Shown piece by piece: positions 14,101 to 17,736 of a DNA stretch of 64,000 nt. The DNA is taken from assembly GCA_001643675.2 (NCBI GenBank), contig LSRY02000002.1, positions 1,922,001 through 1,986,000 of the forward strand, written 5' to 3'. How positions within the stretch are numbered: the stretch's first letter is position 1; each line of letters opens with the position of its first letter. The translations under genes and the position numbers were made by a program. The stretch comes from Monocercomonoides exilis PA203 (Eukaryota > Protista > Preaxostyla). The notes under the pieces were generated by a model. It was not told the DNA's origin. It ran no database searches and saw only the letters and a program-made list of their open reading frames with translations.

Positions 14101-14364
14101 TGATTAACTAAATGCTCATATTGAGAAGGCTTCATTAAAAAATAAGAGAAAGCTAATTCAAAATAAAAAAGTTAAAATAAAAAAGCAATAATTATGTTTT
14201 TCAAACAAAATGATTGTTTTGGAGTTTTCGTTCCGCAATATGAACAATATGATTGACTTACAACACAGAATAAAATGAAAAGATGAAGTTAAAAAAATGT
14301 ACCGAAAATCACTTTCAGCAGCAAAAATAGATGCTAATTCTTTTATATCAGTTTCGTGATGCAT
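11139..14364 (-). CDS. ATE1: Arginyl-tRNA--protein transferase 1 (N-degron pathway), 6 exons
   Basis: Removing introns 14257-14302, 14153-14206, 13987-14037, 12811-13053 and 12560-12709 gives CSYC...YEHLVNHGFRRSG...CCPQYSIR, LYDKYQRVIH, FGAYHMEYRLDGKLVGVSVVDLCP, SSVYFFYDPKYRFLTLG, YYHLG and PSELLCP, all matching ATE1 motifs. Confidence 0.92.
12941..13030. repeat. (GAAAA)18 microsatellite inside ATE1 intron 4
   Basis: Perfect pentamer array read directly. Confidence 0.95.
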
Positions 14365-14477
14365 CCTTTATGATAAATAATTGAAAATATTTGCTTTTAA
14401 CCTTGCTATCAATTAGCACGCATAATTGCTTGAAAGAGCGAAGATTTATTTAGGGTTTTCAAAAAGATCAGATTCCA

Positions 14478-15424
14478 ATGAACCCTGTAGATATTAAAGT
14501 ATTAACAGTCATTTATCTCTATTAAAATCAAATGTTGTTTTTTCTATCATGATGATAATGTAAAACAATAAACAAAATAAATTTCATTTGAATATTGATG
14601 GAAATCCGTAAATTTTCAGAAAAAGCTTGTAATCGTTGGAGACGATGGCGTTGGAAAAACTTGCTTATTAATGGGTTTTATTATCTATTTATAAAGCTTA
14701 TTTAATCCTATAATATATTAAAGTTCATGTAAATGGTGCATTTCCAAAAGGTTTTATCAAATTATATATATCATTTTTATATCTTGTCAATACTTCGAAA
14801 CTTTGACTAGATTCTATTCCAAGTTTGTTTAAATATATATATTATTTCAATTTAACATATTAATGAATTTTGTTCAAATTTTCAAAACCATTTAAAAGCG
14901 TTTGTATTTTATGTTTTTAAATTTTCGTTATCATAGTGAAACAAACGAAAGTGTTTTTGATAATTATACATGTAAAATTCAGGTTAAAAATCAACAGCTT
15001 TTGCTTCAGCTTTGGGATACTCCAGGTTCTTTTATTTTTTGAATCTTATTTATTTTTTGTTTGAGTAGGGCAAGAAGAATTCGATGTAATACGACCTTAT
15101 TCATATCCAGGAACAGACATGGTTTTGCTATGTTTTTCTGTAGCTTCTCGTGAATCGTTTATGAATGCTCAAACAAAATGGAGGGAAGAATTAAGACAGC
15201 ATTGTCCAAAAGCAGAAATTGTTCTGGTTGGAACAAAATGTGACTTAAGAGAAACCTCACCATCGGAATGTATAAAAATCGAAGAATGTAAGGAAGCAAT
15301 GAGGAAAACAGGGGCAGTTGCTTATAAAGAATGCAGCGCTTTAAAAAACACAGGAGTTAGAGAAGCGTTTGAAGAGGCAATTGTTCAAATGACTGATGAA
15401 GGCAAAAAATGTGTTATATTGTGA
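14478..15424 (+). CDS. Atypical Rho/Rac-family small GTPase (~181 aa), highly spliced
   Basis: Exons 14478-14498, 14620-14674, 14724-14750, 14811-14822, 14899, 14952-15025 and 15069-15424 (546 nt) give [44 protein letters not shown]...LWDTPGQEEFD..RPYSYP...VGTKCDLR...ECSAL...KKCVIL (CaaX). Confidence 0.93.
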
Positions 15425-15528
15425 AAAATCACTTATTGTTTTATAAACATGATTTTTTAGTTGTATTTTATGTTGTTAAGGAATTTAAGATCAATGTTCA
15501 TTTCTCAAATCAATAAAATTTGAAAGAA

Positions 15529-17736
15529 ATGGAAAATCTCACTTATGAAGAAGCGACTCAATATTTAAAAGAAATTCAGTTTGAATTAATTAGTAATTTA
15601 TAAATATCACAATTAAATGTTAACAGAGAAAAAATAAAAAATCAAACAGCTCAATTGGATGATTTTTTAAGAGAGCACACAAAAACTTTTTTACAAATTT
15701 CAGAGGCTATTGAATCAAATGAATACAATAGCTTGCAACTTTTGAAGTACACTTTCCCTGCAATTAAAACAGGACTTTCTCATCTTGAACTTAATGTTTC
15801 AAAGCCTGTCGTATCCGCGCTTGATCCGTTACAATTTACTTTATGCTTTTTTTCAAGAATTCAAGAAAATGTTTGTATTTGAATATAAATTAAACTTTTT
15901 TCATGAAGGAGTTTTTGAATTTACAGATAATGACTTGTTTACGAACAAATAACATTTTTCGAGCATCATTGTTGCTTATGACTGCATCAAATTTAATTGA
16001 TGTAATTCTTCCGATGATAAATTTTTTGAAGAAAGAAATGCAAAATGAGATGAATGCAACAAAAATTGAAACAGAATCTACAGAAACGAATATTATTCAA
16101 GGAACAAATGCACGTAGCAAAATGAATCTTTTAAATGCTCTTACTCAAACCTTAGAAAGTTTTAATTATGATTCGTTATGTTCTTCAATTGTTCAGCATC
16201 AGAAGACCGCATTTTTGAGTTTTTCAAGCAAATGTGATATTTCTTCTCAATCATTATTGGTTGCTCTCCTTGTTTCTTCATCATTTCTACTTGTTAATGA
16301 ACCTTCTCCTATTGTAGCAGCTGTTCAATCATTTCTTTTTCTTCAGATGAATCGAATTGAGTTTATAATGAGAAAGAATGAATATGAAAAACGATATCAA
16401 ACAAATGATGAATGCACTGATGAGTTTAAAGAACTTCCAGCAACTTTAATTTCTCAATTGATTACTCAGACCATTGTTGACATTTATAACATATTTTTTC
16501 AGAACAAAGAGGGCAAGTTGAATCTATGTAATCTCATTGTTAACTCAAAAAGACAAGAAAAGGACACGAATGCAGCCGAAGTTTCAGTGAACATAGGAAC
16601 ATCATCTACAAGTCCATCTTCTTCAAACATATGCAGCCCGCTATCATTTGCTAATTATACCCTGTCTTCTGAATCAAAGAAATCTGACATCTCCTCTTCA
16701 GCGCTTGATGCAGATGGCTTTTCTGATCCTTCTGACTCTATTCTTTCTTTCTCGTTCACTCAGCCTTCCTGTGTCCGTTTTTCACTCGAAGACGAAGATC
16801 TTCTTTGCGCAATCTCTGCGCTGTCGCCAAATGATGTGGCTTCTCCGGCTGATAGCAACCCCAAAAGCAACTCTTCCTTTTCTTCTTCTTCTTCTTCTTC
16901 TTCTTCTTCTTCTTCTTCTTCTTCTTCTTCTTCTTCTTCTTCTGCGCACATTTCAAAATCTGCTTCTTCTGCTTCAAATTTTGCTTCTCTTCGTCATCCT
17001 TCTTCACTGTCTTCATCTCCTTCTCCTTCGCCTTCGCCTTCTCCTTCGCCTTCTCCTTCTCCTTCATCTTCCCCTTTGTCAATATCTTCTCCAGTCCAAT
17101 CAGAAGAAGCACACTCCGATTTGAGCATTTTGAGTGGGATGAGTCTTTCTGATGCTGTTTGCTGTGGTCTGTTTCTGTCATCTGCATTGGAGAGCATGAT
17201 GGATGTGTCAGCTGAACTGAAGCAGGAAAAGGAATGTTTAGATGAGATGAATGATAACACTGCAGTGGAAGAGAAGAGCGGAGAGGCAAATGAATCTCAG
17301 ATGAAGACGGAAAGGAAAGGAAATGACAGGCAAAGTGAAGCAGATGAGGGTTCGATGAACAATTCATTGAAACTGCCAATGTCAAGAGAAGTGCAGCAAA
17401 ATATCAATGAAGATGAAATAAAGCAAGGCGATATGAAGAGAAAAGAAGAATTTAAAGAGATGCAAACAAAAGATACTTCTTCTTCCTCCTCTTCTTCTTC
17501 CTCCTCCTCCTCCTCTTCTGATTCATCATCACTTTTAAATTATCAATCAAGCTCTGAAATCAAACAACACTCAAAAACTTCTTCTTTAACATCTCGAATT
17601 ATTGCGAACTATAACAAAATGCATTCATTGTTTGTGATTGATGATGATGTCAGAGATGCCATTTCCTTTTTGTTTATGCATTGGATCGCTTCTGTTTCGC
17701 GCCTTCTCAGTTCAGTGGTTTGGATGAATGTGAAAC

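Follow-up and report, generated by a model that had tools for sequence, protein, structure and literature searches.

How is the reading frame maintained in a GTPase gene of the mitochondrion-less protist Monocercomonoides exilis whose evident exons cannot be joined to each other? The gene lies in a window of 64,000 nucleotides (the whole stretch of DNA that was analysed), which comprises positions 1,922,001-1,986,000 of contig C14 in a genome of 82.3 Mb and 101 contigs. The 12-nt exon at 14811-14822 ends with ..CCA-A in phase 1 and is followed by GTTTGT, and the next exon, at 14952, opens with T-GTT-TTT-GAT-AAT-TAT (VFDNY), so that a direct join of 14822 to 14952 is a frameshift (phase 1 to phase 2). 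A first-pass annotation of the sequence had proposed that a lone C in the gap, at position 14899, is an exon of its own. The analysis presented here leads us to conclude, with a probability of about 0.94, that C14899 truly forms an exon of one nucleotide that the spliceosome includes constitutively in the mRNA of this gene, and that one Thr codon is built from three exons: 14811-14822 contributes the A, 14899 the C and the exon at 14952 the T.

The gene and its neighbourhood

The gene with the one-letter exon is MONOS_16771 (public protein P0001) and codes for a Rho-type GTPase of 181 amino acids. Every exon translation agrees with P0001, and the translation of 15071-15422 is 100% identical to residues 65-181 of that protein. 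P0001 already contains the switch-I Thr, i.e. the public gene model yields this residue. Searches were run with individual exons; wherever the analysis called for the complete protein, P0001 served. The introns of MONOS_16771 are 43-121 nt long (Table 1). When we read the sequence directly, the coordinates and letters that the first-pass annotation had assigned to the exons, to C14899 and to the two introns beside it all proved to be correct.

The surroundings of the Rho gene are tightly packed. On the minus strand a divergently oriented open reading frame starts at about 14362 (14300-14362), and on the plus strand the next gene apparently begins with the ATG at 15531, nine bases past the end of the Rho RNA contig.

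Table 1. Features of MONOS_16771 (window coordinates) and apparent tiny exons of the three CKS genes (coordinates of the respective loci L016-L018).
Feature	Position	Strand	Description	Basis
Exon 1	14478-14498	+	from ATG, MNPVDIK, ends in phase 0	X1 piece 14479-14498 joined to 14620; N-terminus of P0001
Intron 1	14499-14619	+	121 nt, GTATTA..CAG	X1 joint 14498>14620
Exon 2	14620-14674	+	P-loop, then first base of Val	P0001 and RNA contig
Intron 2	14675-14723	+	49 nt, GTTTTA..AAG	joint 14673>14723 with cut +1, X1 and X2
Exon 3	14724-14750	+	27 nt, ..HVNGAFPK..	sequence, RNA contigs, P0001
Intron 3	14751-14810	+	60 nt, GTTTTA..TAG	reading of 7 overrun letters (2 mismatches) and 6 unplaced letters
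Exon 4	14811-14822	+	12-nt micro-exon ATTCTATTCCAA, ..D-S-I-P and A of the Thr codon	homologue in all seven loci
Intron 4a	14823-14898	+	76 nt, GTTTGT..AAAAG	
Single-nucleotide exon C	14899-14899	+	middle base of the switch-I Thr codon A-C-T	RNA, sole AG-N-GT, conservation
Intron 4b	14900-14951	+	52 nt, GTTTGT..GAAAG	RNA resumes at 14952
Exon 6	14952-15025	+	T is the third Thr base; ends with first base of Gly	
Intron 5	15026-15068	+	43 nt, GTTCTT..TAG	joint 15023>15067 with cut +2, X1, X2 and X4; retained in X3
Exon 7, coding part	15069-15424	+	QEEFD...KKCVIL, CAAX box, stop TGA 15422-15424	
3' UTR	15425-15522	+	minimum extent	end of contig X1 at 15522
CKS gene on C72	L016:1700-1703 and 1800		4-nt and 1-nt exon	sequence
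CKS gene on C50	L017:1707-1710 and 1817		4-nt and 1-nt exon	sequence
CKS gene on C13	L018:1649-1652 and 1750		4-nt and 1-nt exon	sequence

A sole AG-N-GT site in the gap

The 129-nt gap at 14823-14951 contains exactly one site of the form AG-N-GT, which divides it into two GT-AG introns of 76 and 52 nt. It reads AAAAG-C-GTTTGT at 14894-14905 (AG-C-GTTTGT at 14897-14905), the C being position 14899. When the gap was shuffled, 0.18% of the trials produced an AG-N-GT(A/T)TG with introns of 40 nt or more on both sides. The motif AGCGTWTG occurs five times in 128 kb (both strands), compared with 2.3 expected occurrences. A pattern search of the whole genome for the exact architecture matched this locus only; the paralogue described below escaped this search because its spacing and donor differ.

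GTTTG had been regarded as the locally preferred donor, which holds for both introns beside the C, whereas the other donors of MONOS_16771 are GTATTA, GTTTTA (twice) and GTTCTT. The acceptor upstream of the C is AAG rather than the usual YAG. RNA folding of the gap at all seven loci considered in this study (see below) gave energies no better than those of shuffled sequences (z -1.3 to +1.0), and there is thus no sign of a fold that brings the splice sites together.

A spare AG is located 15 nt upstream of the acceptor of intron 4b (14935-14951). Its use would add 15 in-frame letters, that is five residues, after the Thr; the RNA contigs join only at 14951/14952.

The single C is present in RNA contigs

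As RNA evidence we used assembled contigs from four RNA-seq runs of one study, aligned to positions 14300-15900; two of the contigs, which come from two of these runs, span the site, and minor isoforms are hidden in contigs. Roughly half of the sequence words in the gene region are present in the four runs, which is what a spliced transcript should give. Contigs X1 (643 nt) and X2 (601 nt) bear out introns 1, 2 and 5, all of which are GT..AG, and their exonic parts show no other differences from the window over about 600 nt, 3' UTR included.

Between exon 3 and position 14952, both X1 and X2 have exactly 13 letters, which end in TCCAAC and correspond to the 12-nt exon plus C. Thirteen letters are expected of the form that includes the C; a direct join would leave 12, and an alternative donor at 14827 would leave 16, ending in ..AAGTTT. 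The mRNA junction reads ..CCAA-C-TGTTTTTGAT.., and the string CCAA-C-TGTTTTT, which had been predicted from the genomic sequence, is therefore found in both contigs. In the genome, position 14822 is followed by a G and position 14952 is preceded by a G, which means that the C of the mRNA is contiguous with neither exon.

The read aligner itself placed neither the 12-nt exon nor the single C (14751-14822). Its output in this region is a spurious 'CA..AG' skip of 194 nt from 14757, with two mismatches in the last seven aligned letters and with TCCAAC left unplaced. According to our reading, what the aligner put on GTTTTAT (14751-57) is ATTCTAT, the seven letters with which the 12-nt exon begins; we deduce the identities of the mismatches from their count and from the exon sequence, and ATTCTAT and GTTTTAT differ at exactly two positions. 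The failure at 14751-14822 is an example of the way in which standard mapping of RNA-seq data loses such exons.

The strongest competitor of the one-letter exon is a splicing pattern in which the main product stems from an alternative donor at 14827 (..CCAAGTTT/), so that the protein would read P-S-F-V-F-D-N-Y without the Thr and the form with the C would be minor. Such a join is in frame and of the GT-AG type, and rare isoforms do not show in contigs. However, the form with the C is seen in both spanning contigs, at a depth of about 10-12, and neither the alternative-donor form with its exon end ..CCAAGTTT, which the first-pass annotation had named as the outcome that would speak against the exon, nor the frameshifting direct join occur in them. 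Moreover, the alternative product would destroy a conserved Thr, and its frame is not kept in the homologues, in contrast to the AG-N-GT site. We consider this pattern very improbable.

A different concern is the source of the RNA. The runs are labelled as the metatranscriptome of a synthetic community, and the contigs could come from another locus, such as a retrocopy or a paralogue, or from another organism of this 'synthetic metagenome'. Against such an origin, the contigs match the exons and the 3' UTR of the window without other differences over about 600 nt, the 82-Mb genome contains just one fully identical (100%) copy of exon 6 and one of exon 7, and the protein of the paralogue shows only 61% identity. 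Searches with exon 6 and exon 7 also revealed no intronless copy in the genome. From the single 100% genomic copy and the perfect match it follows that the contigs derive from this locus and from no retrocopy, and we rate a foreign source as very improbable.

X1, X2 and X4 lack the 43-nt intron 5, whereas one further contig, X3 (15010-15486), reads straight through it, a sign of intron retention or else of some pre-mRNA or DNA in the libraries.

Homologous loci share the layout of the one-letter exon

Six other distinct loci have the layout 12-nt exon, intron, AG-N-GT(A/T)TG, intron, exon (L002, L005/L006, L019, L020, L021 and L022/L023). They represent the only paralogue in M. exilis and five loci on metagenome or assembly contigs that an exhaustive protein search and contig look-ups yielded, with protein identities ranging from 46 to 64%. 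The comparison of homologous loci that the first-pass annotation had called for thus reveals a conserved AG-N-GT architecture. As in the window, the gap of each of the six loci contains exactly one AG-N-GT site, and per locus such a site arose in 0.04-1% of the trials when the gap was shuffled. The introns flanking the single letter in the homologues open with GTTTG or GTATG, and outside the splice signals the introns of the different loci are unalignable.

The paralogue is MONOS_13320 on contig C29, the only one that searches with exon 6 and exon 7 retrieved from the genome. On its coding strand the 12-nt exon (..GTACCAA/GTTTGT) is followed by a 104-nt intron, CAG-C-GTATGC, a 62-nt intron and TAG/TGTGTTTGAT. 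At the five contig loci the 12-nt exon ends with CCNA or CCAG, the first intron measures 76-103 nt and the second one 50-91 nt, and the subsequent exon starts with (T/C)GTnTTTGA... For four of them (L005 and L019-L021), protein identity amounts to 63-64% with the paralogue and to about 51-53% with the window gene, and for L022 the value with the window gene is about 46%. Two further loci, L003 and L004, are distant (33-38% identity).

The letter of the tiny exon and its neighbours in the codon vary to some degree. The codon of L021 ends with C (ACC) and still specifies Thr. The Logan contigs L022 (positions 520-720) and L023, from SRR13490894 and SRR13490892, have T as their one-letter exon and G-T-C as the codon, so the encoded protein would carry Val in place of the switch-I Thr. 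Here the splice architecture is kept though the residue would change.

A tree of the C-terminal exon places six of the loci in one moderately supported clade (87/85), in which the window gene is the sister of the paralogue and the other four; L022 sits on a long branch outside the resolved clade. In view of this placement we do not claim orthology of L022 to the window gene, despite the GDDG and WDTPG motifs that both have in common. The one-letter exon is probably older than the duplication that gave rise to the two M. exilis genes.

We also considered JGI metagenome loci as further relatives. A scan with the alignment of the C-terminal exon gave nine loci, of which the seven with a switch-I motif (L007-L013) belong to other eukaryotes and have PTVFDNY uninterrupted; they therefore add no relatives with a one-letter exon.

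The homologues bear directly on the possibility that 14823-14951 is a single 129-nt intron, that the assembly lacks a C at its donor or acceptor owing to an error or to strain polymorphism, and that AG-C-GT is coincidental. The stretches concerned are ..CCAAGTTTG.. and ..GAAAGTGTT.. as assembled for strain PA203, and the fact that this assembly is Nanopore-based (PMC8767320) speaks for such a scenario. Yet the same letter would have to be 'missing' at six distinct loci in different organisms and assemblies, each time together with a single AG-N-GT(A/T)TG, whose chance of occurring is 0.0004-0.01 per locus; in addition, the C14899 site lies outside any homopolymer. The same layout at six homologous loci excludes a missing C in practice. 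Least probable of all is the removal of one intron with a subsequent insertion of the C through RNA editing or polymerase slippage, for which we found no supporting point in this analysis and which would leave unexplained both the conserved AG-N-GT(A/T)TG in otherwise unalignable introns and the T at the L022 site.

The encoded Rho-type GTPase

With C14899 as an exon, A, C and T combine to a Thr codon and the protein reads IPTVFDNY, as had been anticipated; this sequence aligns with the switch-I motif PTVF(E/D)NY of RhoA and Rac1 (E about 1e-46). We take this residue to be the equivalent of Rac T35 and RhoA T37. The typical features of a Ras-type G domain are present, namely the P-loop GxxxxGK(S/T), the switch-I Thr, DxxG, and GTKCDL for (N/T)KxD, and the C-terminus is a CAAX prenylation box (..KKCVIL, then stop). 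The domain matches of P0001 are PF00071 (precomputed) and TIGR00231 (5.9e-30), and its best matches among solved structures are all RhoA, Rac1 or Rac3, with E about 1e-46.

At the position of the Rho insert helix (about 13 residues after (N/T)KxD), the protein shows a 9-residue gap relative to RhoA. For this reason we name it a Rho-type or Rho-like, insert-less GTPase and not a canonical Rho. Its Gly-12 position is occupied by Asp (GDDGVGKT; 14638-14661) and its Ala-59 position by Pro (WDTPGQ; 15011-15025), and from its sequence the protein may be an atypical, slow-hydrolysing Rho-like protein.

A model for the splicing of the one-letter exon

We propose that two ordinary U2-type GT-AG introns are cut out on either side of the C. 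Introns of about 120 nt are usually recognised across the intron, and strict intron-definition splicing, as suggested in the first-pass annotation, would fit the short introns of this gene. Only one nucleotide separates the acceptor of intron 4a from the donor of intron 4b, and their joint occupancy would hardly be feasible. With splice sites in such proximity, recognition most likely proceeds by intron definition, and the two introns are most likely excised in succession. If the upstream intron were removed first, the join would recreate a donor (..CAAC/GTTTGT); if the downstream intron came first, the upstream acceptor would be followed by an exon of normal size that starts with the C. Both orders would thus yield a workable intermediate. 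Such a stepwise removal would resemble recursive splicing, yet with one letter kept. The model is also in keeping with the intron population of M. exilis, which is described as U2-type GT-AG only, with introns that average about 120 nt (PMC6759080, PMC8767320).

As to its origin, the arrangement could have arisen by two intron gains one letter apart or by a one-letter deletion that was rescued by a cryptic AG-N-GT, the latter being a route that has been suggested for Fusarium (PMC12940212).

Comparison with known single-nucleotide exons

Exons of one nucleotide had been said to be documented in few organisms, and the literature bears this out, with published cases in plant APC11 and VPS55 and in Fusarium CYP621A. 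The 1-nt exon of Arabidopsis APC11 (Guo & Liu 2015, PMC4674806) is conserved across land plants (Yu et al. 2022, PMC8831610). Like C14899, it is a constitutive single nucleotide between AG and GT inside an apparent single intron, is required for the frame and is conserved among species, and the model proposed for it is likewise intron definition with stepwise, recursive-like removal (PMC4674806). The two cases differ in that APC11 is a plant gene whereas M. exilis is a metamonad protist, and in that the upstream intron of APC11 is long (333 nt). The letter in APC11 is an A that was shown by mutagenesis to be copied into mRNA, while the M. exilis case rests on RNA and comparison; in M. exilis, moreover, the letter adjoins a 12-nt exon and stands at the second position of a codon for the catalytic site.

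Plant VPS55 (PMC8831610) also has a conserved 1-nt micro-exon with a conserved extended donor. It is used alternatively, via intron retention, in several plants, whereas in the contigs no alternative form is seen at C14899. A parallel in the codon is offered by the P450 genes CYP621A of Fusarium, with AG-G-GT (Nelson & Syed 2026, PMC12940212): they share the phase-1 to phase-2 join and the position as middle base of a codon within an invariant motif, and the kind of evidence, orthologue comparison plus SRA reads, is alike. The Fusarium letter, however, is G, which fits both splice-site consensuses, in contrast to C in M. exilis (T in one homologue), and the M. exilis exon is common to anciently diverged paralogues (61% identity) and to other species.

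Two further phenomena can be compared. At the zero-nucleotide ratchet points in long introns of Drosophila and vertebrates (cited in PMC4674806), AG also adjoins GT within an intronic stretch and removal is stepwise, but nothing is left in the mRNA and the introns are very long; here, one letter is kept and the introns are 52-104 nt. The mitochondrial cox1 gene of placozoans has a single-base exon as well (PMC5436844), but this one is organellar, with introns of the self-splicing type instead of spliceosomal ones.

Our literature search, which covered M. exilis genome papers other than that of 2016, yielded no description of the one-letter exon of MONOS_16771 in these or in other publications. 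It also yielded no study of micro-exons or of the structure of Rho genes in Monocercomonoides, and no published one-letter exon from a protist. The 2026 paper counted its own case as only the second example, though the APC11 and VPS55 plant clusters had already been described (PMC12940212, PMC8831610). The one-letter exon of M. exilis adds to a rare known kind and shows all of the defining features that could be examined. It is unusual in being common to old paralogues and in lying inside a catalytic-site codon.

Apparent tiny exons in CKS genes and implications

All three CKS/Cks1 paralogues of M. exilis appear, from sequence, to carry a 4-nt exon (ATGG) and, after an intron of 96-106 nt, a 1-nt exon (G) (Table 1). 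In the genome these genes are found at C72:76289, C50:328362 and C13:297878. Each of the tiny exons is flanked by AG and GT(A/T)TG, in the order ..GG-intron-ATGG-intron-G-intron-.., and the resulting codons GGA-TGG-G(AA/TT) specify G-W-(E/V) of the conserved CKS core. This case suggests that M. exilis has one-letter exons outside the Rho genes as well.

An exon of one letter is the smallest unit that a spliceosome can define. The one in the Rho-type gene has outlasted a gene duplication and several speciations while its flanking introns diverged beyond alignment, and this persistence argues for stable, efficient splicing rather than a fragile accident. Since the C occupies the second position of a codon for the catalytic site, every mis-spliced mRNA codes for a GTPase that is either dead or frameshifted. 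In practical terms, gene finders and RNA-seq aligners will miss such exons.

It is conceivable, though at somewhat less than even odds, that oxymonads routinely splice exons of 1-4 nt, that the Rho exon predates both the Rho duplication and the split of several species, that CKS is a second family of this kind, and that many more such exons are hidden or mis-modelled among the about 35,000 introns of M. exilis. If this is true, the culturable M. exilis would be a natural system for learning how a spliceosome deals with a 3' splice site and a 5' splice site that lie next to each other.
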